A stretch of 64,000 nucleotides of DNA from Vitrella brassicaformis CCMP3155 (taxonomy: Eukaryota > Protista > Chromerida). The notes beneath the pieces were generated by a model that had not been told where the DNA came from, searched no databases, and saw only the letters and a list, made by a program, of their open reading frames with translations. This document shows, piece by piece, positions 4,983 through 64,000 of this stretch. How positions within the stretch are numbered: position 1 is the first letter of the stretch; each line of letters begins with the position of its first letter. A program made the position numbers and the translations under genes. The stretch spans positions 1-64,000 of the forward strand of contig CDMY01000374.1 of NCBI GenBank assembly GCA_001179505.1, read 5' to 3'.

Positions 4983-7900
4983 ATGGCTTCCCCCGTTCCT
5001 CGCCTGTTGATCAAGGCGAGGGACCTGACTGTGAGCGACAAGAAGCTTGGTGCGCCTCACGACCAATTGCTGGCCCGATGTCATCGATTGGGTGACCTCT
5101 GTGTACCTCTGTGTGTCTGTGTCAGGGGGTGGAGCATTCGGGACAGTGTACCAGGGCAAGTGGAAGGGTCTGGACGTGGCTGTAAAGATCACAAACATGG
5201 AGGAATTGAGGGAGGCCTCCCCACTCACCGGGGAGGAGCTTACCGAAACAGTGAGTATCACAGTGCGTGTCAAATAACGTGGCACACGAATGTCATGCAG
5301 GAGCTGATGGCTGGCGCGATATAGGATGCTCTGTCCGAGGCTCAGGAGATGCAGCACCTGCGACACCCCAACATAGTGCAGTTCCTCGGTGTCTGCATGG
5401 ACGCCAAGCACGGCCTCATGATCGTCACAGGTACTTCACTTTTTCTCGATTCCATCCATCTGCTTCCTGTCTGTGCGTCGCGTGTCTGTCATTCTCAGAA
5501 TTGTGTCAGGGCGGATCGCTGGACAAATATTTGGTCAAGAACAGACCACTGCCGTTGGATGTGCGAGACAGATTCGTGAGAGAGGTACGAGCGGGCAAGC
5601 CGTCACGCGTCTCGTCTGGATCTGCGTGTCGATTGCCGTCAGATATGCGAGGGTGTGCAGTATCTTCACAACCACGGAATCCTGCATCGAGACTTGAAAC
5701 CAGGGAATATTCTCGTGAGGGAAGACGGCCTTCATGTCTCACTCGATGGCTGCAGCATCTTGTTGTCGTGTCTCGTGTCTATCAGTTGGGCGAGCATTTG
5801 GTGATCAAGATAAGTGACTTCGGCATGACGCGGAATGTTCAAGTGACGTCGAGCTCTTTTGCAGGTAGCAAGAGACATGGGATGGCGGAATGCGGTGAGC
5901 GAGGTGCGTCTGTGTGTGTTGGTGCATCCGTCCCTAGACTGCAGGCGGCATTAAGGGAACCCCCAATTACATGTCGCCTGAATCATTGGATCCAGACAAG
6001 TGTGAGTGCAAGAAAAGACGGTCGCCTTGGGAACTTGAATCACCGCCGGTGTGTGCAGTGGGGAAACCCTCTATGGAGGCGGACATATGGGCGGTTGGAT
6101 GCATTATCGCGCAGCTGTTTGGCGGTCAGCAGATGCACTTTCAGTCAAAGACAGTAGCCTTCACTTGTAATGTTCAGGCGGGCCTCCCTTTGAGGGTTAA
6201 GCACCTCTCATCATCATCACCGCCGTTGTCGTCCGAAAGCAGGTGACCTGCCACGTTGACACATGTGCACAGATCCTCTGAAGTTCTCTTTCTGCCTACT
6301 TCTGTCAGACCCCCCGCATCCCCGATTCCCTGCCTGAGCACATCAAAAGTGCCATCAAGGTAAACCGAGAGCCCTTCTCGTGTGCTGCATTTCCCTTCCG
6401 ATTGTGACGGTGATCAGAGTTGTTTTGCTTTCAAGCCGAAAGATCGCCCCACAGCCAAAGAGGTACCTGCCATAGACTATTGGACAGAGGCGTCGGCATG
6501 TCGTGTCTGCTTGCCTGACTGCGCGATAGTTGCTGACCAAGCTGGGCATGTCGCCGTCTCCGTCAAAAGAGACAGGTCCACTGAAGGTCAAATGAGACGA
6601 GAAGGCCCCCTCGCCTAATCCTGACTGCTTGACTGCGTGCAGAGCCGGTGTTGGTTCCCCCTGCTTCCGTTTCTCGGCTGTTGATCAGGGCGAGGAACTT
6701 GGCTGTGATGTGGGGAAAGAAGCTTGGTGCGCCTCACGACCACTTGCTGGCCCGATACCCTTGACTCATCTGCGTGTATGTCAGGGGGTGAGGCGTTCGG
6801 GACAGTGTACCAGGGCAAGTGGAAGGGTCTGGACGTGGCTGTAAAGATCACAAACATGGAGAAATTAAGGGAGGCCTCCTCACTCACCGGGGAGGAGCTT
6901 ACCGAAACAGTGAGTATCACAGTGCGTGTCAAATAACGTGGCACACGAATGTCATGCAGGAGCTGATGGCTGGCGCGATATAGGATGCTCTGTTCGAGGC
7001 TCAGGAGATGCAGCATCTGCGATACCCCAACATAGTGCAATTCCTCGGTGTCTGCATGGACGCCAAGCACGGCCTCATGATTGTCACAGGTACTCTACTT
7101 TTTCTCGATTCCATCCATCTGCTTCCTGTCTGTGCGTCGCGTGTTTGTCATTCTCAGAATTGTGTCAGGGCGGATCGCTGGACAGAGATTTGGTCAAGAA
7201 CAGACCACTGCCGTTGGATGTGCGAGACAGATTCGTGAGAGAGGTACGAGCGGGCAAGCCGTCACGCGTCTCGTCTAGATCTGTGTGTCGATTGCCGTCA
7301 GATATGCGAGGGTGTGCAGTATCTTCACAACCACGGAATCCTGCATCGAGACTTGAAACCAGGGAATATTCTCGTGAGGGCTGACGGCCTTCATGTCTCA
7401 CTCGATGGCCAAAGCCTCTTGTTGTCGTGTCTCGTGTCTATCAGTTGGGCGAGCATTTGGTGATCAAGATAAGTGACTTCGGCATGACGCGGAATGTTCA
7501 AGTGACGTCGAGCTCTTCTGCAGGTAGCAAGAGACATGGGATGGCGGAATGCGGTAAGCGAGGTGCGTCTGTGTGTGTTGGTGCATCCGTCCCTGGACTG
7601 CAGGCGGCATTAAGGGAACCCCCAATTACATGTCGCCTGAATCATTGGATCCAGACAACTGTGAGTGCAAGAAAAGACGGTCGCCTTGGGAACTTGAATC
7701 ACCGCCGGTGTGTGCAGTGGGGAAACCCTCTATGGAGGCGGACATATGGGCGGTTGGATGCATTATCGCGCAGCTGTTTGGCGGTCAGCAGATGCACTTT
7801 CAGTCCGAGACAGTAGCCTTCACTTGTAATGTTCAGGCGGGCCTCCCTTTGAGGGCCAAGCACCTCTCACTATCATCACCGCCGTTGTCGTCCGGAAGCA

Positions 7901-10900
7901 GGTGACCTGCCACGTTGACACATGTTCACAGATCCTCTGAAGTTCTCTTTCTGCCTACTTCTGTCAGACCCCCCGCATCCCCGATTTCCTGCCTGAGCAC
8001 ATCAAAAGTGCCATCAAGGTAAACCGAGAGCCCTTCTCGTGTGCTGCATTTCCCTTCCGATTGTGACGGTGATCAGAGTTGTTTTGCTTTCAAGCCGGAA
8101 GATCGCCCCACAGCCAAAGAGGTACCTGACACGCACCACTGGACAAACGCGTCGGCATGTCGTGTCTGCTTGCCTGACTGTGATAGTTGTTGGCCAAGCT
8201 GGGTATTCCGGCGAGTCCGTCAAAGAGCGCAGGTCCACTGACGCTCCACTTTGACACGAGAAAGCCCCCATTTGACTGCTTGACTGTGTGCAGACCCGGT
8301 GTTGGTTCCCCCTTCCCCTGTGTCTCCCGTTGACGTGCCTTCCGCTGGCGCTCCACCGGGTGTTCACACGAGCATGGTCAGCACAGTGCCGGGGCCGCCG
8401 AGTACGGTCCATCCAGCACAGGTCGAACTTGTGGTTGCGGAAGAGCAGACAGGTCGGTGTGGAAGGCACGAAGACAACACATGGAGAGACATACGACTGG
8501 TCATCCATGGTTTGTGTGTTGCAGCGCTCCCTACACAGCAGCCGTCAGTGAAGACACCACCGAGCGCCCCACAGCCGCAGATCAAACACGTAAGGGACAC
8601 AGCAGCTGAACCCCACACGTCAAAGGGACGCTGTTCTTGTGCTGGATGTGTGGCAGGCTGACATCTTCGATGCCGTCAGAAAAGGCGATGAGCAGTCGGT
8701 TCATTTGCTCATCGAGCGAGAGGGCAAGGATATACTCGACAAACGAGACAACGACGGGGTATGGAATCGTGACGACGAGAGAAATACACTCAGTGGTCTG
8801 TCTGTGTGGTCTCGTTCTCGCACGCAGTTGACACCCTTCCTTTGGGCTGCCAACAAGGGTCACGTGGGCGTCATGTCGGTCATGTATGAGAGCAAAGTTG
8901 ACGTACTGCAGCAAACAGACCAGGTACCGACCGACGCAGACAAACCACCCTGTGTGCGGCTAGTGATGATGAGGAGATGTGTGTTGGGTGTGATGGAATG
9001 CAGTTTGGTAACACCGCCATGCACTTAGCTGCCAACAGGGGCCATGTTGCGATGGTCAATAAGTTGCTGGAGTGGGATCCCAAACTGATCGACGCACGCA
9101 CCCCGGTAACAGAGCACACACATGTCTCTGACACCTCGGGGTGTGTGTGGATTGCAGAATGGCATCACGCCATTCATATGGGCTGCCTGGGAGGGTCATG
9201 TCGATGTGATGGAGGCCATGTATGAGAGCAAACCTGACGTACTGAAGCAAACAGACAAGGTGTCCACACAGACAAACCATCCTGTGTGCTGCTGGTAATG
9301 AGGAGATGTGTGTTGGGTCTGATGGAATGCAACAGTGGGGTAACACAGCCTTGCATGAGGCTGCCCAGGCGGGTCATGTTGTGGCGATTAATCAGCTGGT
9401 AGATTGGGATTTGAAACTAATCGACGAACGCAGCAATGTAAGAGAGCACACATATGTCTCTGACGCCTCGGTGTGTGTCGATTGTGTGTGTGTGTTGATT
9501 GCAGGATGGCACCACGCCATTCATGCAGGCTGCCTCAGGTGGCAAACTTGCTGTGATGAAGGTTCTGTATGCCAAACGAGGAACAAAGCTACTCACAGAG
9601 ATGGACAACGTGAGACAACACAGTCTTCTCTCACTGCTTGATTGTCTTTCCTTGTGTGCATGACACACAAAGGACGGAAACACAGCACTCCATGAGGCTG
9701 CAGGCTGCTTTCTCCACACTGGAGCTGTGTCTCAGCTGTAAGAAGACAGATAAATGACTGACTCGAACATCTCATCCACTCGGAGTCCCTCTCTCTCTCT
9801 CTCTCTCTCCCTGTGTCTATGTGTGTGTCAAAAGGCTCGAGTGGGGCGGCGGTGCTCTGTTGGATATAAAAAACAACGAGGTGAGCGAACACAGACATTT
9901 ACATAATCGATGGGTCGAGTGGTGTGCTCATCTCATCTCATCACATCAGGGCAAAACGCCGTGGGACATGGCGGTGGACAAGCCAGAGATCAGAAAGATC
10001 ATGAAGAAGTACATGCCTTTNNNNNNNNNNNNNNNNNNNNNNNNNNNNNNNNNNNNNNNNNNNNNNNNNNNNNNNNNNNNNNNNNNNNNNNNNNNNNNNN
10101 NNNNNNNNNNNNNNNNNNNNNNNNNNNNNNNNNNNNNNNNNNNNNNNNNNNNNNNNNNNNNNNNNNNNNNNNNNNNNNNNNNNNNNNNNNNNNNNNNNNN
10201 NNNNNNNNNNNNNNNNNNNNNNNNNNNNNNNNNNNNNNNNNNNNNNNNNNNNNNNNNNNNNNNNNNNNNNNNNNNNNNNNNNNNNNNNNNNNNNNNNNNN
10301 NNNNNNNNNNNNNNNNNNNNGCCATGTATGAGAGCAAACCTGACGTACTGAAGCAAACAGACAAGGTGTCCACACAGACAAACCATCCTGTGTGCTGCTG
10401 GTAATGAGGAGATGTGTGTTGGGTCTGATGGAATGCAACAGTGGGGTAACACAGCCTTGCATGAGGCTGCCCAGGCGGGTCATGTTGTGGCGATTAATCA
10501 GCTGGTAGATTGGGATTTGAAACTAATCGACGAACGCAGCAATGTAAGAGAGCACACATATGTCTCTGACGCCTCGGTGTGTGTCGATTGTGTGTGTGTG
10601 TTGATTGCAGGATGGCACCACGCCATTCATGCAGGCTGCCTCAGGTGGCAAACTTGCTGTGATGAAGGTTCTGTATGCCAAACGAGGAACAAAGCTACTC
10701 ACAGAGATGGACAACGTGAGACAACACAGTCTTCTCTCACTGCTTGATTGTCTTTCCTTGTGTGCATGACACACAAAGGACGGAAACACAGCACTCCATG
10801 AGGCTGCAGGCTGCTTTCTCCACACTGGAGCTGTGTCTCAGCTGTAAGAAGACAGATAAATGACTGACTCGAACATCTCATCCACTCGGAGTCCCTCTCT

Positions 10901-11154
10901 CTCTCTCTCTCTCTCCCTGTGTCTATGTGTGTGTCAAAAGGCTCGAGTGGGGCGGCGGTGCTCTGTTGGATATAAAAAACAACGAGGTGAGCGAACACAG
11001 ACATTTACATAATCGATGGGTCGAGTGGTGTGCTCATCTCATCTCATCACATCAGGGCAAAACGCCGTGGGACATGGCGGTGGACAAGCCAGAGATCAGA
11101 AAGATCATGAAGAAGTACATGCCTTTGTGTGGGCCTTGCTGTGTGATCATGTGA
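4983..11154 (+). pseudogene. G1: tandem TKL-like kinase + kinase + ankyrin repeats + CaaX, with nonsense codons in both kinases
   Basis: Spliced model: [48 protein letters not shown]. It continues in frame through EPVLVPPASVSRLLIRARNL into a second kinase, then a Pro-rich linker, about 8 ankyrin units and ..KKYMPLCGPCCVIM*. In-frame TAG at 5322-5324 and 6981-6983 and TAA at 6198-6200. Confidence 0.85.
9215..11126. other. 806-bp apparently identical duplication flanking a 300-N gap (10021-10320); probable scaffolding artefact
   Basis: 9215-10020 matches 10321-11126 (offset 1106), each abutting the N run. Confidence 0.8.
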
Positions 11155-11400
11155 GTCAGAGTCTGTCAGTTGCTCGGGTGTGCATCGAATAAGAAGCTAA
11201 GAGGCATTTCGAGTGGGTGATCTGACAGTGAGACGTGACCGATCATGTGTCGTCGTAAATGACACGGCGAATGGCAGTCCTCGGGTTCTTTCTTGTGTCT
11301 TCGTGTGGACCACTGCGAGGGGCTGTGAGGTGCTGTGTTTTTGCCAATGAGACATCAAGACTTGATTGGAAATGTCCATCAACACGTGAGCATACAGCCC

Positions 11401-11658
11401 TCAGTTCTTTCTGCATTGATGCTGCCCTGATTGCTGGTCAGCTGCTCGCGAAGGCTGCGATTCTCCTCTTGCGAAGCGCCAAACGTCTGTATCAGTGACA
11501 TAAGGAGACACACACCTCACGCCGATTAGCAGCCTTTGTCGTTGGCACACACACCTGTTGGTTGACAGTCTGTCTGGTCCTCTCCTTGTCGAGGCAGCTC
11601 TCGACCACCGACTTTCCAACGCAGCCGCCTGCAACTCACGTTAAAGACGCAATATCGC
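11401..11658 (-). pseudogene. Orphan copy of the last two exons of the coiled-coil gene (cf. 45325-45581)
   Basis: Same exons (AIL.LxRELQAAALE..CLDKERTRQTVNQQ / TFGASQEENRSLREQLTSNQGSINAERN*) without the upstream gene. Confidence 0.85.
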
Positions 11659-12224
11659 CTGACAAACGCCCCCTTCCTCCCTCCCTCCCGATTCATGCAC
11701 ATCTGACCCCTTACGTCTGTTGGGCGGGTTGATTAACTTGATCGAATTCAGCTCTCCCTGACAAGTACGTGCACGTACGTATGCCTGCGTTGTTTTTTCG
11801 GGGTTTTCGCGTGTTTAGTTCCAGGCACCAGCACATACCAAAGCAAACACGTGGCTGGCAAGGCAAGCGCACAGCCGGATGTGTCCCACTCTGGCTCTCT
11901 GTGTGTGTGGTCTGTATGTTGTCGTGGATGTACTCCATGTTTGTTCAGCCGTGAGATGCGACGCAGCATCGAGTGCATCGACGGGGACGCACAGACCACA
12001 CAACACCAGGAGCGAGCAGCACTACACACACACAAAGCACTGTACGGTCGGGTTATGTGTGTGTGTGTTTGTGTTCGCCTCGACGTGAGAACGGATATGG
12101 CAATTTAATTGCGTGTGCGTGTGCGTGTTGGGGGATTTATTCATACCATGCATTTCGTTTGCTTTTATGTGTTCGTGTTCGTGTGTGTGTGTGATGTGTA
12201 TATACCGATGTGTGTGTGTTTCTG

Positions 12225-13108: not shown

Positions 13109-16100
13109 ATGGCTTCCCCCGTCCCTCGCCTGTTGATCAGGGCGAGGGACCTGACTGTGGGTGACAAGAAGCTTGGTGCGCTCACGACCAACTGCTGGCC
13201 CGATGTCATCGATTGGGTGACCTCTGTGTACCTCTGCATGTGTGTCTGTGTCAGGGGTTGGAGCATTCGGTATAGTGTACCAGGGCAAGTGGAATGGTCT
13301 GGACGTGGCTGTAAAGATCACAAAGATGGAGAAATTGAGGGAGGCCTCCCCACTTACCGGGGAGGAGCTTACCGACAGCGTGAGCATCGCAGGGCGTGTC
13401 AAATCATGTGGCACACAGGCATCATGTGATGCAGGAGCTGATGGCTGGGGCGATGGAGGATGTTCTGTCCGAGGCTCAGGAGATGCTTTACCTGCGACAC
13501 CCCAACATAGTGCAGTTCCTCGGTGTCTGCACGGACGCCAAGCACGGCCTCATGATCGTCTCAGGTCACCTCGGTTCATTCATCTGCTTCCTGACTGTGT
13601 GTCGCGTGTCCACAATTCTCAGAGTTGTGTAAGGGCGGATCGCTGGACAAATATTTGGCCAAGAACAGACCACTGCCGCCCGACGTGCGAGACAGATTCG
13701 TGAGAGAGGTACAGCACAGCAGACAGCGTCACATCTAGATTTGTGTGTCGATTGCCGTCAGATATGTGAGGGGGTGCAGTATCTGCACGACCACGACATC
13801 GTGCATCGAGCCTTGAAGCCGGGCAATATTCTCGTAAGGGCAGACAACCTTCACCTCTCGGTCGATGGCTGCAGCATCTTGTTGTGTCTCGTGTCTGTCA
13901 GTTGGGTGAGCGTCTGGTGATCAAGATAAGTGACTTCGGCATGACGCGGAATGTTCAAGTGACGTTGAGCTCTTCTGCAGGTAGCAAGAGACATGGGATG
14001 GCGGAATGCGGTGAGCGAGGTGCGTCTGTGTGTGTTGGTGCATCCGTCCCTGGACTGCAGGCGGCATTAAGGGAACCCCCAATTGAATGTCGCCTGAATC
14101 ATTGGATCCAGACAACTGTGAGTGCAAGAAAAGACGGTCGCCTTGGGAACTTGAATCATCGCCGGTGTGTGCAGTGGGGAAGCCCTCTATGGAGGCGGAC
14201 ATATGGGCGGTTGGATGCATTATCGCGCAGCTGTTTGGCGGTCAGCAGATGCACTTTCAGTCAGAGACAGTAGCCTTCACTTGTAATGTTCAGGCGGGCC
14301 TCCCTTTGAGGGCCAAGCACCTCTCATCATCATCACCGCCGTTGTCGTCCGAAAGCAGGTGACCTGCCACGTTGACACATGTTCACAGATCCTCTGAAGT
14401 TCTCTTTCTGCCTACTTCTGTCAGACCCCCCGCATCCCCGATTCCCTGCCTGAGCACATCAAGAGTGCCATCAAGGTAAACCGAGAGCCCTTCTCGTGTG
14501 CTGCATTTCCCTTCCGATTGTGACGGTGATCAGAGTTGTTTTGCCTTCAAGCCGGAAGATCGCCCCACAGCCAAAGAGGTACCTGACACGCACCACTGGA
14601 CAAACGCGTCGGCATGTCGTATCTGCTTGCCTGACTGTGGTAGTTGTTGGCCAAGCTGGGCATTCCGGCGAGTCCGTCAAAGGGCGCAGGTCCACTGACG
14701 CTCCACTTTGACACGAGAAAGCCCCCATTTGACTGCTTGACTGTGTGCAGACCCGGTGTTGGTTCCCCCTTCCCCTGTGTCTCCCGTTGACGTGCCTTCC
14801 GCTGGCGCTCCACCGAGTGTTCACACGAGCATGGCCAGCACAGTGCCGGGGCCGCCGAGTACGGTCCATCCAGCACAGGTCGGACTTGTGGTTGCGGAAG
14901 AGCAGACAGGTCGGTGTGGAAGGCACGAAGACAACACATGGAGAGACATACGACTGGTTATCCATGGTTTGTGTGTTGCAGCGCCCCCAGCCCAGCAGCC
15001 GTCAGTGAAGACACCGCCGAGCACCCCACAGCCGCAGATCAAACACGTAAGGGACACAGCAGCTGAACCCCACATGTCAACTGGCCGCTTTTCTCTGCTG
15101 GATGTGTGGCAGGCTGACCTTTTCAGGGCCGCCGTGTTTGGCGATGAGCAGTCGGTTCATTTGCTCATCGAGCGAGAGGGCAAGGATATACTCGACAAAC
15201 GAGACGAGCTCATCTTCAAGGCATGCAATCGTGACGACGAGAGAAATACACTCAGTGGTCTGTCTGTGTGGTCTCGTTCTCGCACGCAGTTGACACCCTT
15301 CCTTTGGGCTGCCAACAAGGGTCACGTGGGCGTCATGTCGGTCATGTATGAGAGCAAACCTGACGTACTGCAGCAAACAGAACAGGTACCGACCGACGTA
15401 GACAAACCACCCTGTGTGCGGCTGGTGATGATGAGGAGATGTGTGTTGAGTGTGATGGAATGCAGTTTGGTAACACCGTCATGCACTTAGCTGTCAACAG
15501 GGGCCATGTCGCGATGGTCAATAAGTTGCTGGAGTGGGATCCCAAACTGATCGACGCACGCACCCCGGTAACAGAGCACACACATGTCTCTCAAGCCTCT
15601 TCATGCCGATTGTGTGTGTGTGTGTGTGTGTTGATTGCAGTCTGGCGAGACGCCATTTATGGAGGCTGCCAGAGATGGTCATGTCGATGTGTTGGAGGCC
15701 CTGTATGACAAACGAAAGGACCTGGTCACACAGAAAAACATCGTGAGACACAGAATGCCTCCCGCCTCATCTGATTGATTGCCTTTCTTTGTGTGCATGA
15801 CACACACAGCTCGGCGAGACGGCGCTGCATGAGGCTGCAGGCCATGATGAAATTGAAGTGATGAAGTTTCTGTACGAGATGAACGGGTCCATCCTGCAGC
15901 AAACAGGCCGGGTACCAACCTAAGCATCTTCTGTGCTGCTGGTCATGGTGAGAAGATGTGTGTTGGCTGTGATGGAATGCAGAATGGTAACACTGCCCTG
16001 CACTCGGCTTGCTGGGGTGGCCATCTTGTGGCCGTCAATAAGCTGCTGGCGTGGGATCCCAAACTGATCGATGCACGCGACAAGGTAACAGAGCACACAC

Positions 16101-16676
16101 ATGTCTCTGACACCTCAGCGTGTCGATTGTGTGTGTGTTTTGATTGCAGAAGGGCAGGACGCCATTCATGCAGGCTGCCATAGGTGGTAACGTTGCTGTG
16201 TTGAAGGTTCTGTATGCCAAACGAGGAACAAAGCTACTCACAGAGATGGACAACGTGAGACAACACAGTCTTCTCTCACTGCTTGATTGCCTTTCACTGT
16301 GTGCATGACACACAAAGGACGGAAAAACGGCACTCCATTTGGCTGCAATCTGTGGCAACTCTGCGGCTGTGTCTCAGCTGTGAGCGACACACATGAATGA
16401 CTGACGCGAATGTCTCATCCCCACTCTCTCTCTCTCTCTCTGTGTGTGTGTCATTCTCAAAGGCTCAAGTGGGGCGGCGGTGCGCTGTTGGACATCAAAA
16501 ACAACTATGTGAGTGCACACAGACATTCACACCATCGATGGGCTGAGTGGTGTGCTCATCTCATCTCATGACAACAGGGGGAGACGCCCTGGGACAATGC
16601 AGAGGACGAGCCAGAGACCAGAAAGATCATGGAGAAGTACAAGCGCGCGTGTGGGCCTTGCTGTGTGATCATGTGA
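13109..16676 (+). pseudogene. G3: TKL-like (pseudo)kinase + ankyrin repeats + CaaX
   Basis: Same exon structure as G1 with a single kinase. The catalytic loop is HRALKPGN (GCC at 13810-13812). TGA at 14084-14086 replaces the Tyr of GTPNYMSPE. About 9 open ankyrin units follow, ending ..KYKRACGPCCVIM*. Confidence 0.88.
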
Positions 16677-16922
16677 GTCAACGTCTGTCAGTCGCTCGGG
16701 TGTGCATCGAATAAGAAGCTATGAGGCACTGTGAGTGGGTGATCTGACAGTGAGACCTGACCGATCATGTGTCGTCGTAAATGACACGGCGAATGGCAGT
16801 CCTCGGGTTCTTTCTTGTGTCTTCGTGTGGACCACTGCGGGGGGCTGTGAGGTGTTGTGTGTTTGCCAATGAGACATCAAGACTTGATTGGAAATGTCCA
16901 TCAACACGTGAGCATGCAGCCC

Positions 16923-17350
16923 TCAGTTTCTCTCTGCATTGATGCTGCCCTGCTGGCTGGTCAGCTGCTCACAGAGGCTGCGATTCTCCTCTTGCGAAGC
17001 GCCGAACGTCTGTATCAGTGACACAAGGAGACACACACCTCACGCCGATTAGCAGCCTTTGTCGTTGGCACACACACACCTGTTGGTTGACAGTCTGTCT
17101 GGCCCTCTCCTTGTCAGGCAGCTCTCGAGCCGCCGATTCTCCGGGGCATGAGTACTCACACCCGTCCGCAGTCACATGACACACAAGAAGACGAGCTGAC
17201 GGTCCCCACACGTGGACTAAAATGCCTCAGATGCAATTAACCACAGAGAGAAATCTGTATGTGCGCATCTGCCACTCAGTGATGCGTTCCGTCAGGCAGG
17301 CACTGAGTCGGGTGGCCTCCTCCCTTCCAAAGGCTTCTCTTCGGTGCGTA
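16923..17350 (-). pseudogene. Coiled-coil gene 3' fragment plus adjacent exon-like block, inverted copy of ~51150-51750
   Basis: ENRRLESC.DKERARQTVNQQ / TFGASQEENRSL.EQLTSQQGSINAERN*. The block gaggaggcca.ccgactcagtgcc..acggaacgcatcactga also occurs at ~51190-51230. Confidence 0.75.
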
Positions 17351-28244: not shown

Positions 28245-28614
28245 TTTGTGACACTCAGTTGTTCCACATATCCATCGATGGGTTCGTGTGTGCAAACCCG
28301 TGATGGGCATGTTGCCGTGGATGCGAGAGCGAGCAGTACATGACTGCGTCGAATCAGTCGCTGTCTCGATCAACGTGCGCACGACATGTGTGTTCGGTCC
28401 ATACAGCCGGCCAGACGCTGACCACTCAGTCAGCACCCGTGGCACCGAAAAAGACACCAGGTAGAAGGACAGCACACAGGCAGGCTGAGCTGCTGAGGCA
28501 CCTCACACCACAGAGTGACAGCTGCTGTCTATCAGGCAGCCCCAGACACACACACACACACACACACACTGGACAGAGACAAGGCCTTAAACACTTCACA
28601 TCAGGCAGCAGTGA

Positions 28615-28900
28615 CTATCCCTTGTACTTCTCCATGATCTTTCTGATCTCCGACTCTCTTGCCCCCCTGTCCCATGGGGTCTTCCCCTGTTGTCATGAGA
28701 TGAGATGAGCACACCACTCAGCCCATCGATGGTGTGAATGTCTGTGGGCACTCACCCTGTTGTTTTTGATGTCCAGCAGCGCACCGCCGCCCCACTCGAG
28801 CCTTTGAGAATGACACAGACAGAGAGAGAGTGGGGATGAGATGTTCGCGGCAGTCATTCATTTGTGTCGCTCACAGCTGAGACACAGCTGCGGATTTGTC
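28615..28900 (-). pseudogene. Truncated 3' end of a kinase-ankyrin paralog (last three exons)
   Basis: ..AAVSQL / LEWGGGALLDIKNNR / GKTPWDRGARESEIRKIMEKYKG*; no upstream ankyrin or kinase exons. Confidence 0.8.
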
Positions 28901-28974
28901 ATTGTATGCAGCCGACATTTCCCGACTGCACAGTTGGGTGTCCTCGGTCCTGCTATGTGCGCGATGTGCATTAG

Positions 28975-36989: not shown

Positions 36990-39897
<2,908 letters not shown>

Positions 39898-45581: not shown

Positions 45582-45835
45582 GGGCTGCATGCTCACGTGT
45601 TGATGGACATCTCCAATCAAGTCTTGATGTCTCATGCATGGCAAGAACACAACATCTCACCCCCCTCGCAGTCGCTTACGCATATATCCATGCCCCCTCA
45701 CATGAAAACACGAGAAAGAAGCTGAGGGCTGCCATTTGTATTCGCCATGTCATTTGCGACGACACATGATCACCCACTCACAGTGCCTCCTGGCTTCTTA
45801 TTCGAAGCACACCCGAGCAACTGACAGACTCTGAC

Positions 45836-50151: not shown

Positions 50152-51424
50152 GAGGAGCGAACTGTGCTCGTTAGCCCCGCTGTCCGTTCGGCCCCCAACG
50201 CTCCCAGGATTCTCGACTATCCGCCGGCAGATTGGTATCCACAGAGACATTTTGGTCCACGTGCGGGTGCTCACGCGCCTTTTTGTATCTCAACTGACTG
50301 AGGACGGTCCTTGTTACATACACCCACCCCATCATGTGACCCGGCATGCGTCTGTGTGGATGAATTCTACTCGATGCGATGGAGGAATGTCACTGCATGG
50401 TGATGCGATCGATCAACACTCACGCAGCCGCGAAAAGAGTTCTCATTACAGGCGCTCATTTCTGACCGTAAAGGCAGCAGTACACTGCTAATTGTGGACC
50501 GAGTAGCAGCGCCCACATTAGTCAATCACCCTTACCGGCCGATCTCCTCCCTCTCTGTTGGTGTGTGCTATACTTGTCAGCCACCGAAACTCATCTCGTT
50601 GTCCATCCATCTCAACACCGTAAAACTCACAATGATCGAACCGATGAGCCGTACAGCCAGAGACTGCATGGTGTCTGCTTGTCTGTCTGTCTCATCCGTG
50701 TCTCTTCCTTAACTGCACCGCCCTTCCCTGTATGGCGGTCGTGACGTTGACCATGTGCGCAGGAAGGGAAGGCATGAGTGGCAAAAACAGATGGGTAACA
50801 GAACCAGCGCGTTTGTGCATTGTTACGCAGCTTAGACAATGCATGTGTGTGGCAAAAAGCGGTCGGGTGGCCACGCGAGAGAAGTGGGAGCAAAAAGACG
50901 TTCGTCTGTGAGGGTGCTGGTTGGTACGTACGTACACAGGTTAAATACATACACATACACAGATGGATAGGCACACGACGGTTAGATAAATACATATCAC
51001 ACAGCGTCATGTGGCCCGAACAGTGGAACGTGTGCACTACATGTGCACATGTGTGTGTATGTGCCTGGCTTTCTGTCTGTCTGTCTGTTTGTCTGTTGGC
51101 TGGCAGGGATTGAACTGAACTTTGACCGCGAAGTCGTGCAAGTGGTCTTCAAGTGGGCAGCCGAAAGGAAGCCTTTGCAAGGGAGGAGGCCATTCGACTC
51201 GGTGCCTTCCTGACGGAACGCATCACTGACTTGCCGTGCAGACGCGCGCATACAGATTTATCTCTGTGGTTGCATCTGAGACACTTTGGTCCACGTGTGG
51301 GGACCGTCAGCTCGTCTTCTTGTGTCATGTGACTACGGACGGTCCCTATTAAGTACACCCAGTCACTTCAGGACCCCTATCGCACTCATGCCCGGAATGA
51401 AAGGCAGGATACGGGCGCCTAAAC

Positions 51425-51748
51425 GGCAGGAGGGCAAGACCATCGAAGCTGTGAGGAAGGGTGTGTGTGTGTGTGATTGTTTGTCAGGCGATATTGCGTC
51501 TTCAGCGTGAGTTGCAGGCGGCAGCGTTGGAGAATCGGCGGCTCAAGAGCTGCCTCGACAAGGAGAGGGCCAGACAGACTCTCAACCAACAGGTGTGTGT
51601 GTGCCAAGGACAAAGGCTGCTGATCGGCGTGAGTGTGTGTCTCCTTATGTCACTGATGCAGACGTTTGGCGCTTTGCAAGAGGAGAATCGCAGCCTCCGC
51701 GAGCAGCTTACCAGCCGGCAGGGCAGCATCAATACAGAGAGAAACTGA
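51425..51748 (+). pseudogene. Orphan copy of the coiled-coil gene 3' exons
   Basis: QEGKTIEA / AILRLQRELQAAALENRRLKSCLDKERARQTLNQQ / TFGALQEENRSLREQLTSRQGSINTERN*. Confidence 0.85.
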
Positions 51749-51979
51749 GCGCTGCGTGCTCACGTATTGATGGACATTTCCAATCAGGTCATGATGTCCC
51801 ATGGCAAACACACAACACCTCACAGCCCCTCGCAGTGGTCCAGATGGAGACACAAGAAAGAAACCGAGGGCTGCACTTCGTATATTCGCCGTGTCATTCG
51901 CGACGACACATGATCACCCACTCACAATGTCTCCTAGCTTCTTATTCGAAGCACACCCGAGCGACTGACAGACTGTGAC

Positions 51980-54900
51980 TCACATGATCATCCAGCAAGG
52001 CCCAGAAGCAGGCTTGTACGGCCGCATGATCTTTCTGATCTCCGGCCTGTTTGCCGCCCAGAACCATGGCGTCAGTCCCTGTTGTGATGAGATGAGCTGA
52101 GCAAACCACTCAGCCCATCGATGGTGGGAATATCGGTGTGCACTTACCTTGTTGTTTGTGATGTCCAGCAGAGCACCGCCCCCCCACTCGAGCCTTTGAG
52201 AAGGACACACACACAGAGAGAGAGAGAGAGAGTGGATGAGATGTTCGCATCAGTCAGTCATCTGTGTCGCCCACAGCTGAAACACAGCGGCAGATTTGCC
52301 CCAGAGTACAGCCCCATGGAGTGCCGTGTCGCCCTCCTGTGTGTGTCATGCACACAGAGGAAAGGCAATCAATCAGTGAGAGAAGATTGTGTTGTCTCAC
52401 CTTGTCGGTCTGTGTGAGAAGGTTCTTTCGTTTGGCATACAGGGCCTTCAACACATCGACATGACCATTCCCGGCAGCATAGATGAATGGCGTGGCGCCC
52501 TCCTGCAATCAACACACGTACACACACAATCGAGACACTGAAGCGTCAAAGACATGTGTATGCTCTCCTAGATTGTCGCGTGCATCGATCAGTTTGGGAT
52601 CCCACTCCATCAGCTTATTGACAGCCGCGACATGGCCCTCGTAGACAGCCTTGTGCAGGGCAGTGTCACCACGCTGCATTGCGTCACACCCAATACACTC
52701 TTTATCACCATCAGCAGTACAAGATGGTTTGTCTGTGTCGGTACCTTGGTCTCTGTTTGCTGCAGTACGTCAGGTTTGCTCGCATACATGACCGACATAA
52801 CGCCCACCTCACCCTTCTGTGCAGCCTTGAGGAAGGGCGTGAACTGTGCGCAGGAATGAGAAGACACAGACCACTGAGTGCATTTCGATCGTCTTCACGA
52901 TTCCATACCTCGAAATTGTATTTGTCTCGTTCCCGTTTGTCGAGTATGTCCTTGCCATCCCTCTCGATGAGCAAACGAACTGACAGAGACCATGACCGAT
53001 GGATGGTTCGATGGATTCTTCACTTATATGTTTGAGTGTCTCGCGATGTCTCTGTTTACCCATCCCATCCCATGTTACCGGACTGCTCATCGGCGGCCTT
53101 GACGGCTTCGAAGATGTCAGTCTGACAGACAATCAGCACAAGAACAGCGGCCCATTGACGTGTGGGGTTTAGTTGCTGTTTCCCTTACGTGTTTGATCTG
53201 CGGCTGTGGAGGGCTCGGCGATGTCTTCACTGACGGCTGCTGGACGGGGAACGCTGCACGACACACATGACACATGAAACGATTCAATACATGTGCGTGC
53301 CTTCCACAGCTGACCTGTTTGCTCTTGCGGAACCACAAGTTTGATCTGTGCTGGCGAGACCGCACTCGGTGGCCCCGTTATGGTGCTGGCCATGCTCGCA
53401 TGGACACCCGCTGTATGGCCAATGGGAGACACGACAGCGGGAGAAACAGAGGGAGGGAGAACCGACAACACCTCTGCACGTAGTCAAGCAGTCTAAATTA
53501 GGCGACGGGGGCTGGCCCAAGGCGTTTAACCGGCAATTGACCTGTATCTTTCGACGGACTCGCCGGAATACCCAGCTTGGCCAACAACTACCAAGCGGTC
53601 AGGGAAGTAGACACTCGACATGCACACGCCTTTGTCCAATGTCTATATCAGGCACCTCTTTGGCTGTGGGGCGATCTTTTGGATTAAAGGCAAAACAACT
53701 CTGAACAGCAACCACGATCAGAAGGGAAACGCGGCAAACAGGAAAGGGCCCTCGGCTTGTCTTGATGGCACTTTTGATGTGCTCAGGCAGGGAATCGGGG
53801 ATGCGGGGAATCTGACATGCGTGTGCAAAAAAAGACTTCCAGAGAATCTGTCAACACGTGTCAACGTGGCAGGTCACCTGCTTTCGGACCACAACGGCCA
53901 TCATGATATTTACGGCACTTCAGCCTCCGAAAGGAGGCCCACCTGAACATCACAGATATAGGCTGCAAGTGTGTCCGAGTGAAGGTTGCATCTGCTGACC
54001 GCCACACAGCTCCGCAATGATGCATCCAACCGCCCATATGTCCGCCTCCATAGAGGGCTTCCCACTGCACACACCGGCAGTCATTCAAGTTCTCAAGCCC
54101 ACCGGCTTTTGTTGCACTTACAGTTGTCTGGATCCAAAGCTTCAGGTGACATGTAATTGACGGTTCCCTTAATGCCACCTGCGGTGCGGTGACGGATGCA
54201 ACAAGCACAGACGCACCTCACTCGCCGCCTTCCGCCATGCCATGTCTCTTGCTACCTGCAGAAGAGCTCGACGTCACTTGAACATTCCGCGTCATGCCGA
54301 AGTCAGATATCTTGATCACCAAATACTCAGCCAACTGACAGACACGAGACACAACAAGAGGCTATGGCCACCGACCGAGAGGTGAAGGTTGTCTGCCCTC
54401 ACGAGAATATTGCCCGGTTTCAGGTCTCGATGCAGGATTCCGTGGTCGTGAAGATACTGCACGCCCTCACATATCTAACGGCAATCGACACACAGATTGA
54501 GATGAGTCACCTGATGGCTCTGACGCTCGTATGCTTTGCTGTACCTCTCTCACGAATCTGTCTCGCACGTCGGGCGGCGGGGGTCCGTTCTTAGCGAGGT
54601 AGGACGCTAGAGAGCCGCCCTCACACAACTCTGAAAATGACAAGCAGACATCACGAGACAGCCTGGCTGGACAAAGCGAAGTGTATGACCACCTGTGACG
54701 ATCATGAGTCCGTGTTTCTTGTCTGCGCAAACACCTAACAGCCGCACGATGTTGGGATGCCGCAGTGAAAGCATCGGCTCAGCCTCGATCAGAGCGTCCT
54801 CCATCGCTCCAGCCATCAGCTCCTATGCACATGCCACAACAAGGCATGCGATAAACAATGCACGAGCGGCGACATCTCACACCCTCACGTCGTCATCGAC

Positions 54901-55159
54901 CTCCTGTCCGGTCTCCCTCGTTTCCTCTCTCAGCTTCTCCATATTTGTCACCTTGACCGCCACTGGCTGGCCGCGCCAAACGCCTCTCAACACCACCCCG
55001 AATCCTCCACTCCCTTAGAAATGCACACACAAAGAAACCAGCCCACTGACACTGACAGGTGGTTGCGGCCCGCAATTAGATTTTGTCGAGCTGACCAAGC
55101 CGCTTGTCCTCCACAGTCAGGTCCCTCGCCCTGATCACCAAACGAGACGTGGCAGCCAT
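51980..55159 (-). pseudogene. Gene P: TKL-like kinase + ankyrin repeats, CaaX lost
   Basis: [37 protein letters not shown] 1-nt deletion (TGGG vs TGGGG, ~54061-63) frameshifts the DIW exon. An ankyrin donor reads CT instead of GT (52571-70). It ends ..PASGPCWMIM*. Confidence 0.85.
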
Positions 55160-55272
55160 GGCGAAGACCTGAAGACGCGCCGGCGGCGGCGGCGGAAAGG
55201 CCCCCAAGAGCCCCCACCAAAAGCCCGGGGGGCCCCTCTCGACCCGGACTCGGAGAGCATCTTCATCTCGAG

Positions 55273-57820
55273 ATGGCTTCGGGCGTGCCCCTCCCCAAGG
55301 AGACTTCCCTCGACATCCTGAACAAGGCCAATTGCGAAGCATCGGTAAGCGGGCAGTCTTCGTGAGTCAGACGGCATGTCAGCCAGTGTGTGGTCATGTC
55401 AGGTGATGCTTGTGCCGGCGGGTGAACCTAAGAGAGTTCGAGAGCGGCTGAAGAAGGAGGAGAAGAAGTACGATAGAAAGGGCATCGAAATGGAGCTCAC
55501 TGGGGAAGTCTGTGGCGTCGAGGTCGGCGCAAAGCCAGGGTTCAAGTGGGAGAGTGGGTAAGAACAATGCGGAGACTAGGGCGGAAGACATTTTTGATGA
55601 TCGCCCTTCTCCCATGCAATGCAGTGAGGAGAAGGAGGAGGAGATCGATGTGGAGGTTGAGTATGCGTATTTCCGCCTGGCCAAGGAATGGCACAAGCTC
55701 GATCCTGGCAAGAAGATGACCCTGCACACCATCAGCCCCTGCTACATCTCCATCTTCATCGACGGCAGCAAGCACAAGGCCATGGACCGAATGATCCACC
55801 CTAACGAACTGCGGGATGAGAACGGCATTGTGCTTGTCAGGAGTAACCCTCCCTTCGTGTCCTACAACGAGTATTTCCACCAAGAGAGAAACATCGAGGC
55901 TACCGGCTTCCGGCTGCATATGTACAACCTCGGTAGTGGTACAAGTGACACCGTGCTTACGGCTGTGCATGGCGTCGGTCCCGGTGCAAAGGCTTCTGTG
56001 GTCTTGAAAACGAAGACGCCGGCGCCCCGCAAGGAGGACGAGCCTGTGGACAATTCGCAGCTCTGGATGGACCACACAGATCCCTTCTGCCCCGAAGAGA
56101 CCTTCCGCCTTGTGTCTGCAGCCTTCCCTCAGTCAACCCTTCGAGTGCACAAGGAAAACAAGACGCTTCTACTGGATACGCCGACGATCACGACTCCTCA
56201 GGCGAGGGAGAAGGGCACGGCCAGCTTGGAGCACTGGAAAATGACAGGGGCCGCCTTGAGCAAGCCACTTGATTTGTGCCAGTCTTTCTCTGCATGCTGC
56301 AAGCCCTCGGTGTCAAAGGACGACGAGATCAACACGCAGAAGCACACCTCGGGGCGCAGGATCAGTGCCACGTACGGCGTGGCGTCGACTCTGTCGTGTG
56401 AAGGCCTGCCGGAGCATCTGATGTGTGTGGTGAACGACACCGTCGTCATGAAGAAGATCGGATGCTGTGACCGGACGCCTCACCTGTGGCAAGCTGGTGA
56501 ACCAATCGTAATTAAAGGTACTCATAGGCTGCAGAGGACGTGTGGTGCGTGCATTTGATAGTGTCTTGTTTCTGTCCTCAGGGCAAACGGTCCCTATCGA
56601 TCGGAAAGGGGCGGCTCACGACGCAGACACGACAGCAAGCGAAGAGGTCAAGCAGGGAATGAATGCTTTGAAGTCCTCTTCATGTCTCTTGTCTCTCGTT
56701 CCAGAACAAAACCATCTTTGAAGCGTGTGCCGAGGGCTCCGAGGGCGACCTGAAGGCGTTGATCAAATTCATCACCAAGAAAAGGCCCCAAGTGTCTCGA
56801 GGACGCTGACGACGACGGCTTCACGCCTCTGCACTACAGCGCCCAGAACGGCCAGGAGATGTTGGTCAAGGAGATTGTCGAGCGAGGAGGGAAGCACCTC
56901 ATTGAGAAACGGACGAAGGTTCAGGAAGAGCCCACTCCTACACATCTTGCGGCGAAACGAGGGCATGTGTCGGTGGTCAACCTGCTGCTGAAACTGGGAG
57001 GAGACCGTCTTCTCACCATCCAAGACAAAGTAAGTGTCATCTTCGTGCTTTCAAATGACAGACTGGCAGACAGTTCATGCAACTTTCGCGTGTCTGCTGT
57101 GTCTCTTGCGTGTAGTATGGTCGCACGATTGCCGGCGTCGCTGCGGAGGAGGGACAGCTGGCGGTGCTCAAGGCCATCGTCGAGCGAAAAGGCGTCGACT
57201 TCATCCTCTCACTCGAATCCAACGTACACCTGTTTCGCACAAATCATGTCTCCTGCACAAAGGTCTTCGTATTCTTTCAGGGTCGGACGGTTTTCCACGA
57301 CGCTGCCTTTGGTGGCCATGTGAGCGTGTTGCGGCAGCTAGTCGAGTGGAGCGGCAGCCCCCTGGCCCTCAAAATTGGCAACCAACATGGCCTCACTCCT
57401 TTGCACATGGCTGCCAGCGGCAATCGTGTGGAGGCGATGGAGTATCTGCTGAAGGAGGGAGGGGTGACCCTGCTTCAGAAGACCAACACGGTCGGCGGAG
57501 ACACAGAAGAGAAGTGTTCTCTGTTGTCACTCTTTTCTCTTCATTTCCGCTGCGTGCAGTTCCGCAACACCTCAATGCATCTAGCCTGCCTGCAAGGGCA
57601 CAGGGAGGCCGCCATCTGCATGGTCAACAAGCAAGGAGGCCGCGATCTTCTCAAGAAAACCAACAAACATGTAAGGAATGCACGCACAGAGTCATGGCAA
57701 GCGATCTCCCTCTCTCGCCGTCCCTGTGTGTTTGTGTGTGTAAAGGGGAAGACGCCGATTGATTTGGCAAAGTGGAGGGGCCATGGGGATTTAGCGACAG
57801 AGTTGGAGAGTAAGGGCTGA
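55273..57820 (+). pseudogene. Gene R: unrecognised ~370-aa N-terminal domain + ankyrin repeats; probable 1-nt frameshifts
   Basis: Long open exon ~55625-56518, then ankyrins (GFTPLHYSAQNG, PTHLAAKRGH, GLTPLHMAASGN, GKTPIDLAKWRG). An extra A in AAGAAAAGG (56780-83) breaks the frame between TIFEACAEG..FITKK and KGPKCLED. A second slip is likely near 55290. Confidence 0.7.
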
Positions 57821-62162: not shown

Positions 62163-64000
62163 ATGTCGGCCGCTCCCCGCCTCCGCATCGGTCGCAAGGA
62201 CCTCACATTCAACGAGGCAGACAGGCTGGGTGAGCTCGAGACCTTCGCGCACCACACCGTCAGGGGAATGCGTGTGTGTGGCACTGTGGGTGTGTTCAGG
62301 GAGGGGGGGCTTCGGAACGGTCTTCAAGGGCATGTGGAAAGGTCAGCCTGTGGCTGTCAAGGTGGTCGACGAGGACATCAGACAAGAAATCGACAGAGAT
62401 GTGGGCAAAGCGATACCTCCCGAATGAATGACGACTGTTACGAGTGTCTTTTGCTCATGCAGGACCTCTACGACGAGGTCTTGAAGGAGGTGGAGCCGAT
62501 GCTGCACGTCAAACACCCCTATGTCATCAAGTTCCTGGGCATCTGCACCGACAAAACATATGGGCCCATGATCATCACAGGTGAACTCTGCTGTCTGCTC
62601 GTCGCGCCCACTTGCCTGCGGATTGTTTTCATGTGTCTCAGAGTTGTGTGAAGGGGGCTCGCTGCAGTCGTATCTCGAGAGTGGGGAGCCCCTGTCAGCC
62701 GACCTCCGCGCCAAGTTCACCAAACAGGTGAGAAACAAATTAGGGCAGTAAGCCGAATCATCATACCGGCTCTTTGCTCCCTGACAGATTTGTGAAGCCA
62801 TGCAAGCTTTTCACGACCATGGCGTTGTGCATAGAGACCTAAAACCTGGCAACATACTCGTAAGCTGCACGCTGAGCCGTGCATTGTCCATTTGCTGTTT
62901 GTTTATGCTGCAGGTGACCAAACTATTTGACCTGAAAATCACAGACTTCGGTCTCGTCATTGACCTCAGCAAGACACTGTCGACGGCACAAGGCGGTAAA
63001 GAGACGCATACAGAAAGAGACTCCGATTCAAATACACATCACACGTCTATGTGCAGGGGCTGGCACATTTTTGTACATGGCCCCTGAGGCACTCGATTCG
63101 AATGGTGAAGTCAATCCAGCACCAAATAATGTTGTGTTCATGCATGGCTTGTGTGGCAGCCAAGGGGTTGACGACAGCGGCGGACATCTGGGCCGTCGGG
63201 GCGATCATCCTGCAGCTGCACGGCGTCTCAGTGCAGGTTCTGTTTAAGTGCCTCGTCAGATTGCGGAAGGTCCACCGAAGCGAACCCAAGACAGAAAGAT
63301 AGAGTGCTATAGCTGGAGCCATTGTCACTGCCTTTAATATATGCAGGCACCCGACATTCCCGACTCCATCCCTCCACAGGCCAGAGACATCATCAAAGTA
63401 AGCGGACTGCTGTTTTCACATCGATTGCCGTACTTCGGAAAGGCCCTTGTTTTTCTCTGCGTGAAATGGATGATTCATCAGAAATGCTTTGCCGAGAAGC
63501 CCGCCGATCGGCCCACAGCCAAACAAGTCACATACAAGCGATCCGACACGGCAAATTGAGGGTGCTGATACGTCTGTCGCTTCTTGTTCACAGATTCTCG
63601 AGAAGCTGGGGGTCTCGTACGTGCCCTCAACTCAACAGGGGGCTGCTCCGCATACTCGGAAGGGCCCAATGGGGTGGCTGTTAGGAAGCTTCAAACGACA
63701 AGGTGCGTCTACACATGCTTAAGCTGCACACGATCGATCGCATACGTGTTTGTCATTTTGTCTCGTTCTGGCCTCCAGCGGCTGTTTCGCATTCTCCGAC
63801 AAGTGCATCGTCCACCAATGTGTCTGCCGTCGGGCACTCGTCCAGTGTGCACATGAGCACGGCCAACACCACAACGGGGCCGCCCAGCAGTGTGGCCAAG
63901 ACCTCTCAGCCGCCCCCACAGCACATTGGTCGGGGAGACACACACACACAGAGGGAGCCACACCTTTCGATGCTCTGTCGGTGTCGTGCAGCGCCTCCCG
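62163..64000 (+). CDS. Gene Q: divergent TKL-like kinase paralog, open as far as visible, 3' end beyond the window
   Basis: [52 protein letters not shown]. It has the same intron positions as G1/G3/O/P and a similar Ser/Pro linker. Confidence 0.82.

Follow-up and report, generated by a model that had tools for sequence, protein, structure and literature searches.

A Vitrella-only kinase-ankyrin gene family with a diversifying ankyrin face as a candidate recognition system

Receptor repertoires with hypervariable solenoid repeats are present in animals, plants, fungi and bacteria. To our knowledge, almost nothing is known about the recognition of viruses, bacteria or each other by free-living alveolates, the nearest photosynthetic kin of the apicomplexan parasites. 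A cluster of genes encoding kinases followed by ankyrin (ANK) repeats in Vitrella brassicaformis, an alga of coral reefs and a relative of malaria parasites, raised the question of whether such genes form a recognition repertoire or an ordinary set of signalling kinases. The family was not found described in a literature search. The window analysed was the stretch of 64,000 nucleotides at positions 1-64000 of contig CDMY01000374.1 of Vitrella brassicaformis CCMP3155.

Organization of the locus

Seven kinase-ANK genes were located within the window (G1, G3, I, K, O, P and Q). The kinase motifs and ANK blocks were found at the positions given below, in agreement with the public annotation.

4983-11154, forward strand: G1, kinase unit a (4983-6641), kinase unit b (6642-8232), Pro/Ser-rich linker, six ANK exons, CaaX end CGPCCVIM before the stop
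10021-11126: assembly artefact, a gap of 300 N and then 9215-10020 a second time without mismatch
13109-16676, forward strand: G3, kinase, linker, seven ANK exons, CaaX end CGPCCVIM before the stop
28553-28930, reverse strand: fragment, duplicated 3' end of an ANK cassette, copy of the 3' end of I (part of D, CT, end KYKG before the stop)
29618-32436, reverse strand: I, intact-looking type-2 kinase, four ANK exons (A, B, C, D) and caps, end KYKR before the stop
37022-38437 (kinase) and 38869-39897 (ANK), forward strand: K, type-2 kinase, four ANK exons, end KYKR before the stop
From 41998: kinase-only gene, unrelated to the family
45836-50250, reverse strand: O (P0153), type-1 kinase, linker, MORN block (46914-48265), four ANK exons, CaaX end CGPCCMIM before the stop
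51980-55159, reverse strand: P, type-1 kinase and four ANK exons, annotated as two genes
55273-57820, forward strand: divergent ANK-only gene of 652 aa, head-to-head with P, 114 bp between them
62163 to contig position 65159, past the window edge, forward strand: Q (P0154), kinase-ANK gene encoding 626 aa, kinase domain complete

Single-exon Pfam scans were weak, since the exons measured only 45-160 nt, and annotated proteins with exact exon mapping were used instead. Gapped tblastn fused exons over introns; ungapped tblastn was used with exon borders projected via DNA alignment. The structure of G1 was derived from the P0151 exon map, exon projection, ANK HMM matches and a reading of the C-terminus.

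In the preliminary description six kinase-ANK genes, a seventh at the right edge and a fragment had been listed. All were recovered, and Q proved to be a full kinase-ANK gene continuing beyond the edge. The same held for two kinase subtypes on one type of ANK cassette (kinase motifs, ANK blocks and annotation), for the integrated domains (the MORN insert of O, Pfam E = 8.5e-32, and the tandem kinase unit of G1) and for a variable repeat number, which by ANK HMM matches was 4, 6 or 7 between paralogs, within a range of 4-7. The repeat number of G1 had to be corrected from 9-10 to six. Self-blastn showed that 9215-10020 and 10321-11126 were 100% identical over 806 bp and abutted both gap edges, from which it follows that the flanks are an unmerged assembly overlap. 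When the overlap was collapsed, the last G1 exon stayed in frame through the CaaX end.

Gene I (P0163) contained a full kinase by Pfam (profile positions 5-259 of 263) in 21 GT-AG exons. The exons of K were open and its kinase motifs intact, without an ATG of its own; in the annotation, K forms the 3' portion of an ANK-calpain-kinase-ANK gene (1483 aa, 32523-39897). Gene O was transcribed and spliced, as exact RNA contigs covered 47253-47365, 47453-47584, and 47791-47895 joined to 47953-48065, and MMETSP transcripts exist for other family members. The head-to-head pairing of a P-type gene with an ANK-only gene recurred on another contig. The kinase-only gene at 41998 was rejected as a member, having a generic Pkinase match only and no similarity to the family guide. 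Unrelated genes were interspersed (GT4, SET, two MFS, OsmC and RNF216-like), and the telomere repeat (TTTAGGG)n was absent from the whole window; a subtelomeric position of the cluster was not confirmed.

The window paralogs were 72-98% identical at the nucleotide level across kilobases, far above chance. The family census returned about 25-30 close relatives on at least 15 contigs, all from Vitrella, which agreed with the lineage specificity suspected earlier; the next matches were generic ANK proteins. When JGI and MMETSP relatives were looked up, five of six had a Vitrella cluster-mate at 90%. The "metagenome relatives" were dismissed as a second lineage, because those looked up joined Vitrella proteins in 90% clusters. 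Hence, the gene family is seen only in Vitrella brassicaformis. The summed contig depth of the cassette was about 30x, in line with the census, though depth is not copy number.

Kinase heads, lesions and the ankyrin cassette

Pkinase followed by Ank_2 was recognised by Pfam in P0163, P0154 and P0155. By similarity ranking among the 60 best solved relatives, which is not a phylogeny, the type-1 kinase was nearest to MLK4, DLK, CTR1 and MLK1 (P0155: E = 7e-36 to MLK4 and 8e-35 to DLK), and type 2 was nearest to GCN2, plant "ScRIPK", CDK2, CIPK and BIK1, with no clear group. The VAIK, HRD and DFG motifs were present in P0155, P0154 and K, and TKL (MLK/Raf-like) membership was found for type 1 only. 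The RIPK4/ANKK1-like architecture of the preliminary description thus stood in its domain order and failed in RIP-family kinship, as no chain named RIPK4 or ANKK1 occurred among the 60 best solved relatives of the kinases.

All five type-1 kinase units (G1a, G1b, G3, O and P) carried stops or a frameshift. Units a and b of G1 were tandem copies, 92.7% identical, with in-frame stops in each (TAG 5322-5324 and TAA 6198-6200 in a; TAG 6981-6983 in b, where the G-loop reads GGEAFG). In G3 a stop (TGA 14084-14086) was found in E7 and HRD was changed to HRA. Gene O had a stop in E8 (TGA 49057-49055), and 5 nt were missing from its ANK exon C; the stops were called from one assembly, and the contig over the O stop has one unlocated mismatch. 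In P, one nucleotide was deleted from kinase exon E8 and a stop lay in E9; the ANK part had lost the start of r1, the donor of exon B (GT to CT) and the CaaX cysteine (Cys to Trp, GPCWMIM before the stop). The lesions differed from copy to copy and included substitutions as well as indels, and the annotated models skipped them via "introns" of 180-466 nt. The suspected pseudogenisation of many copies was thereby traced to specific lesions in four genes. Judged by these lesions, P is a pseudogene and G1 likely one; G1, G3, O and P are decaying, I and Q look intact, and K is open but without its own start codon.

Each ANK repeat corresponded to one symmetric, phase-0 exon, and the repeats were recognised as Ank_2 with E values down to 1e-44. 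An AF2 model of the ANK part of I (pLDDT 92.8) predicted six helix pairs and, within the loop, one additional short helix, and the variable positions mapped to the inter-repeat loop and helix 1 of this model. In a Foldseek search the best matches of the model were DARPins, at about 2 Å rmsd over 190 residues, and AnkB was also matched. The variable positions were richer in aromatic (15% versus 6%) and charged (40% versus 16%) residues.

A CaaX box, CVIM or CMIM, followed CGPC in G1, G3, O, P0152, P0148 and P0159; it was lost in P and absent from I and K. The membrane-anchor tails described earlier do vary, but they are CaaX boxes rather than transmembrane segments, and neither a signal peptide nor a transmembrane segment was seen in the family proteins. 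The proteins are predicted to be cytosolic and mostly lipid-anchored, and the Cys-rich CaaX box should farnesylate and palmitoylate the protein onto the membrane.

Selection on the ankyrin face and cassette mosaicism

The dN/dS ratio was 0.27-0.49 for the kinase, about 1 for the linker and 0.64-1.13 for the whole ANK part. Within the ANK part the surface dN was 0.55-1.24, as compared with 0.06-0.20 in the framework, 0.07-0.37 at four-fold sites and 0.06-0.23 in introns, and the introns had diverged less than the exons. The strict binding-face codons gave an omega of 2.9 (dN 0.94, dS 0.33) and the framework 0.40 in nine cassettes, including intact genes of other contigs, by NG86 counting with a surface set that was guided by DARPin positions and fixed after the alignment had been seen, an approach cruder than recombination-aware codon models; Q was omitted from the codon analysis. 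None of 10,000 random codon sets reached an omega of 2.9. In four independent pairs, the counts were 107/235 nonsynonymous against 76/377 synonymous (Fisher p = 3e-11). Four of the six window cassettes came from broken genes, so that part of the signal belongs to copies that are now neutral. The surface excess was also observed between intact genes (I-K and P0159-P0231), and the pattern held among I, K and three intact genes elsewhere.

Site-wise dN/dS of the ANK part against the kinase had been suggested as a check of the preliminary description. Rather than uniform purifying selection without a surface excess, it revealed a large nonsynonymous excess at the binding face (dN 0.94 against dS 0.33) together with purifying selection on framework and kinase. 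Codons of the canonical binding face (hairpin tip and inner helix) were near-random between paralogs while framework, kinase and even introns remained similar, which indicates selection for diversity at the putative ligand-binding face of the ANK repeats.

The kinases of the two types were 33% identical, yet the introns of their cassettes were only 6-7% diverged. Gene G3 was pieced together from G1-, O- and I/K-like tracts, in which the nearest paralog switched about every 150-1000 bp; here the mosaic paralogs reported earlier were confirmed. As read from these tracts and introns, the cassettes have evidently been exchanged between genes via gene conversion or recombination, although a short-read assembly of about 30 similar cassettes may contain chimeric joins that would inflate mosaicism. 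A RIP- or deaminase-like origin of a transition-only patch was considered and rejected, as both lineages showed all four transition types. Together with the lesions and the census, the patchwork supported the birth-and-death, mosaic and lineage-restricted character of the cluster.

Proposed role and comparison with known systems

The proteins are modular. At the N-terminus stands a TKL/MLK-like kinase, a very different second kinase or, in some members, MORN or no head at all. Next come a disordered linker rich in Pro and Ser and a consensus-like solenoid of 4-7 ankyrin repeats, and the basic C-terminal tail in many cases carries a Cys-rich CaaX box. The genes are born by tandem and segmental duplication and then die. 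The ANK face may capture variable protein ligands at the membrane, the kinase may phosphorylate the captured ligands or signal their presence, and the family could represent a recognition-kinase repertoire evolving like innate-immune or allorecognition receptors. A Vitrella-only modular recognition-kinase family with a diversifying ANK face is the explanation that we consider moderately probable.

The ANK variability could have arisen by relaxed constraint in a pseudogene graveyard, without selection, given the stops, frameshifts or splice-site losses in G1, G3, O and P and the overall ANK dN/dS of 0.64-1.13. However, neutral decay predicts an omega of about 1 throughout, rather than 0.40 in the framework and 2.9 at the surface; surface dN far exceeds intron divergence, the intact pairs I-K and P0159-P0231 share the pattern, and a kinase omega of about 0.3 indicates that the decay is recent. 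This account is largely refuted and extremely improbable. Nearly as improbable is an assembly or annotation artefact, in which collapsed or chimeric short-read contigs would produce the mosaics, fusions and lesions. The duplicated gap flanks are one clear case of it, Logan contigs of the DNA runs were short over the ANK part with many alternative joints, and the annotated models avoid lesions by their 180-466-nt "introns". Against it, DNA contigs of public runs, possibly the source data of the assembly and not independent, matched O exactly in pieces of 190-1365 bp, the exon structure and hypervariable positions recurred at loci on four other contigs, and the lesions were copy-specific substitutions and indels.

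A more serious alternative, although still rather unlikely, is that signalling kinases expanded in this lineage in the ordinary way, with ANK faces specialised to different endogenous substrates or scaffolds and no conflict or non-self role. The cluster lies among housekeeping genes, its kinase is under purifying selection, cytosolic lipid-anchored proteins resemble many signalling kinases, no defence-type domain was found by Pfam in the members scanned, and paralog divergence under selection fits as well. Such specialisation is harder to reconcile with a surface dN about 3-fold over dS and about 10-fold over intron divergence, with rapid birth and death marked by independent lesions in five kinase units, and with repeated cassette exchange, a combination typical of arms-race or allorecognition families and not of stable substrate specialisation. 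Even if the role were endogenous signalling, the family would be a clean natural case of DARPin-like surface diversification.

A recognition role, as the preferred reading, is supported by the evolution of the family, which makes it a concrete recognition candidate with a defined putative binding face, an output domain and a predicted membrane anchor. That the ligands are foreign (virus, bacterium, parasite or selfish element) rather than diversified endogenous partners is suggested only tentatively, as possible rather than probable. Still more speculative, and unlikely as a whole, is the idea that the family is an innate recognition system of an alveolate with kinases in the place of NOD domains. 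Membrane-tethered kinase-ANK proteins would sense foreign or non-self proteins with their hypervariable ANK face, and the decaying copies (G1, G3, O and P) would act as a store of cassettes for templated gene conversion into expressed genes. Such conversion, likened to the diversification of chicken Ig or VSG, would explain hypervariable codons inside near-identical exons and introns.

Animal RIPK4 and ANKK1 share with the Vitrella proteins an N-terminal Ser/Thr kinase, a linker, C-terminal ANK repeats and a cytosolic location. They carry about 10-11 ANK repeats and lack a lipid anchor, whereas the Vitrella proteins have 4-7 repeats and a CaaX box, a kinase that is not RIP-like by its nearest solved relatives, and form a diversifying multigene family rather than one or two conserved genes. 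The likeness is one of convergent architecture. Cereal tandem-kinase resistance proteins (WTK/TKP class) are kinase proteins with integrated domains, and the likeness extends to kinase-based birth-and-death clusters, the two kinase units of G1 in one reading frame, and the integrated MORN and calpain. However, the units of G1 are a recent tandem duplicate, 93% identical and both with stops, and not the two distinct kinase domains of one functional protein that define the TKP class; the variable recognition part in Vitrella would be the ANK solenoid and not a kinase or pseudokinase decoy.

DARPins are designed consensus ankyrin binders whose libraries are randomised at positions 2, 3, 5, 13, 14 and 33. 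The natural hypervariable positions of the Vitrella repeats coincide with these, and the predicted ANK fold superposes on DARPins as described above; the Vitrella family differs in being natural and in its 34-residue repeats with an extra short loop helix.

Fungal NLR-like (STAND) receptors carry hypervariable ANK, TPR or WD repeats (Dyrka et al. 2014, PMC4986451). As in Vitrella, positive diversifying selection acts there on a few residues of each ANK repeat, located in the inner helix and hairpin loop of the concave face; the number of repeats is variable, members swap repeats with each other, and many N-terminal domains are combined with one repeat module in a large lineage-specific repertoire (PMC4986451). 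The positive selection at the repeat binding surface that marks NLR/STAND receptors was found here as well (omega 2.9 versus 0.40). In contrast to the fungal receptors, the Vitrella proteins begin with a protein kinase, with MORN or without a head domain, and neither NACHT nor NB-ARC was detected by Pfam in the members scanned or in precomputed Pfam lists. The repeats within a Vitrella gene are not near-identical, each occupies one exon, the C-terminus carries a CaaX box, and the host is an alveolate alga. In this family, the exon-per-repeat layout, cassette exchange and birth-and-death known from immune-type families have arisen independently, on a kinase scaffold.

Organization of the kinase–ankyrin genes

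The genome was intron-rich, with exons of 45–160 nt and GT-AG introns of 52–100 nt. The kinase–ankyrin (ANK) genes and their neighbours were arranged as follows.

G1: 4983–11154, + strand, two kinase units (G1a, G1b) fused in frame, then ANK
G3: 13109–16676, + strand, kinase-ANK
Between G3 and I: GT4, SET/Rubisco-LSMT-like and two MFS genes
I: 29618–32436, − strand, kinase-ANK
32523–39897, + strand: 1483-aa gene model in the order ANK–calpain–kinase–ANK, with K as its 3' half
Between K and O: OsmC gene, then a kinase-only gene unrelated to the family
O: 45836–50250, − strand, kinase-ANK with a MORN block
P: 51980–55159, − strand, kinase-ANK, split in the annotation
Divergent ANK-only gene: start 114 bp from P
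Between the ANK-only gene and Q: RNF216-like gene
Q: from 62163, kinase-ANK
P0158: 78–81 kb of the same contig, outside the window, a further family member

The kinase was encoded by 11 exons and was followed by three Pro- and Ser-rich linker exons. The ANK cassette, common to both kinase types (type 1 in G1a, G1b, G3, O and P; type 2 in I and K), began with an N-cap exon (r1), continued with repeats A to D, of which D was divided between a pair of exons, and closed with an exon for the C-terminal cap. The ANK exons were 96–108 nt long, all in phase 0, with one repeat per exon, a layout also found at loci on four other contigs. Four repeats were counted in I, K, O and P and seven in G3. A Cys-rich CaaX box (CVIM or CMIM) terminated G1, G3, O and the family proteins P0152, P0148 and P0159; its cysteine was lost in P, and I and K ended in KYKR. 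The ANK part of I was modeled by AF2 (pLDDT 92.8) as six helix pairs with a short third helix in each repeat, and superposed on DARPins at ~2 Å rmsd.

The two G1 kinase units arose by tandem duplication; they recurred at a spacing of ~1.66 kb and were 92.7% identical. In a representative search, a kinase-exon query matched CEM06973.1, encoded on the same contig CDMY01000374.1, at 92% identity. This contig spans 95,438 bp, and the positions of three annotated proteins placed the window at its nucleotides 1–64000. K lacked its own ATG. An ANK-calpain (Peptidase_C2) gene at 32523–36500 lay immediately 5' of K and was fused to it in the annotation; a calpain–kinase–ANK protein is predicted by the annotated model.

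In the self-comparison, 9215–10020 and 10321–11126 were 100% identical over 806 bp and abutted both edges of the N run, and the remaining paralogous segments were at most 98% identical. Therefore, these flanks were read as overlapping ends of two contigs, joined with a gap between. When the overlap was collapsed, the last exon of G1 became continuous and in frame, terminating in CGPCCVIM and a stop; the public model ends at 9298 and omits this terminus. The kinase-ANK cluster of the preliminary description was confirmed, with the gap flanks corrected to an assembly overlap and the G1 repeats to six. Another 300-N gap was located at 2308–2607, within the first 4.9 kb, where long ORFs gave no Pfam match.

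Selection on the ANK surface

Between type-1 units, dN/dS was 0.27–0.49 for the kinase and ~1 for the linker. For the whole ANK cassette it was 0.64–1.13, and the cassette exons were more diverged than the introns. When codons were split by canonical binding positions, dN reached 0.55–1.24 at the surface versus 0.06–0.20 in the framework; divergence was 0.07–0.37 at four-fold sites and 0.06–0.23 in introns. The surface set followed published positions, but was fixed after one alignment had been inspected; dN/dS was estimated by NG86 counting, which ignores recombination.

In an enlarged set of nine cassettes, including three from intact genes on other contigs, strict DARPin-type positions gave a dN of 0.94, a dS of 0.33 and an omega of 2.9, versus 0.40 for the framework. 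None of 10,000 random codon sets attained the observed surface value, and four non-overlapping pairs showed 107/235 nonsynonymous versus 76/377 synonymous changes (Fisher p = 3e-11). The variable positions mapped to the inter-repeat loop and helix 1 of the model of I and were enriched in aromatic and charged residues. The diversification proposed earlier was supported more strongly than could be known from reading the DNA alone.

Decay, exchange and co-duplication

The 14 kinase and linker exons were projected by DNA alignment, and every type-1 kinase unit of the window carried a lesion.

G1a: TAG at 5322, TAA at 6198
G1b: TAG at 6981 (the same stop as in G1a), G-loop mutated
G3: TGA at 14084, HRD changed to HRA
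O: TGA at 49057
P: 1-nt deletion in E8, stop in E9

Public gene models skirted these lesions by "introns" of 180–466 nt. The lesions were considered recent because of the low kinase dN/dS between the units. In the ANK parts, O had a 5-nt deletion in exon C, and P had lost the r1 start and one splice donor; in G1 and G3, both the ANK array and the CaaX box remained open. Pfam detected a complete kinase in Q and I, and the kinase exons of K were open with intact motifs. The MORN part of O was still transcribed and correctly spliced, as judged by RNA contigs.

The type-1 and type-2 kinases were 33% identical and differed in their nearest solved relatives, yet the cassette introns of G3 diverged by only 5.8% from K and 7.2% from I, versus 14% from G1, the nearest paralog of its kinase; along G3, the nearest paralog switched every 150–1000 bp. 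The MORN-to-ANK junction of O was 54% identical to a MORN-ANK protein of another contig. Between O and P, 42 transitions and 3 transversions were counted at 48675–49208 (kinase C-lobe exons and introns), and 123 and 108, respectively, in the adjoining 924 nt; the O stop codon was one of the changes within the segment. A one-directional deaminase or RIP signature was rejected, since both lineages showed all four transition types.

An ANK-only gene stood head-to-head with a kinase-ANK gene both here (across 55159–55273) and on another contig (across L005:3633–3841). The ANK-only genes encoded 652 and 611 aa and lay 114 and 208 bp, respectively, from the partner gene. The two ANK-only genes were 70.5% identical across 2.4 kb, therefore the pair was duplicated as one unit.

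About 560 bp 3' of the stop codon were also conserved, at 11169–11732 (G1), 16691–17226 (G3), 45331–45633 (O) and 51422–51975 (P). Within it, an RNA contig from a paralog showed an opposite-strand splice with GT..AG borders, linking 45427 to 45492, and an annotated 356-aa gene without Pfam matches converged on O. The stretch possibly represents a transcript that is convergent or antisense to the kinase-ANK unit and was duplicated together with it. A Rubisco-LSMT substrate-binding domain gene recurred near kinase-ANK genes (20852–23580 here; L007:21449–22545 on contig CDMY01000429), which hints at a larger segmental duplication.

Family range and comparison with known systems

Protein searches recovered about 25–30 Vitrella proteins with the cassette on at least 15 contigs, headed by a kinase in most, by MORN in some and by neither in others; beyond them, E-values fell to generic ANK proteins. 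The JGI and MMETSP matches looked up fell into 90% clusters with Vitrella proteins, two of which held MMETSP transcripts, and no other organism was present among the 90% clusters of relatives looked up. Literature searches found no published description of the family.

Kinship with RIPK4/ANKK1 was not established. An immune role of the family is likewise not established. Among described systems, fungal NLRs came closest to the Vitrella family, through their hypervariable ANK domains (Dyrka et al. 2014, PMC4986451).
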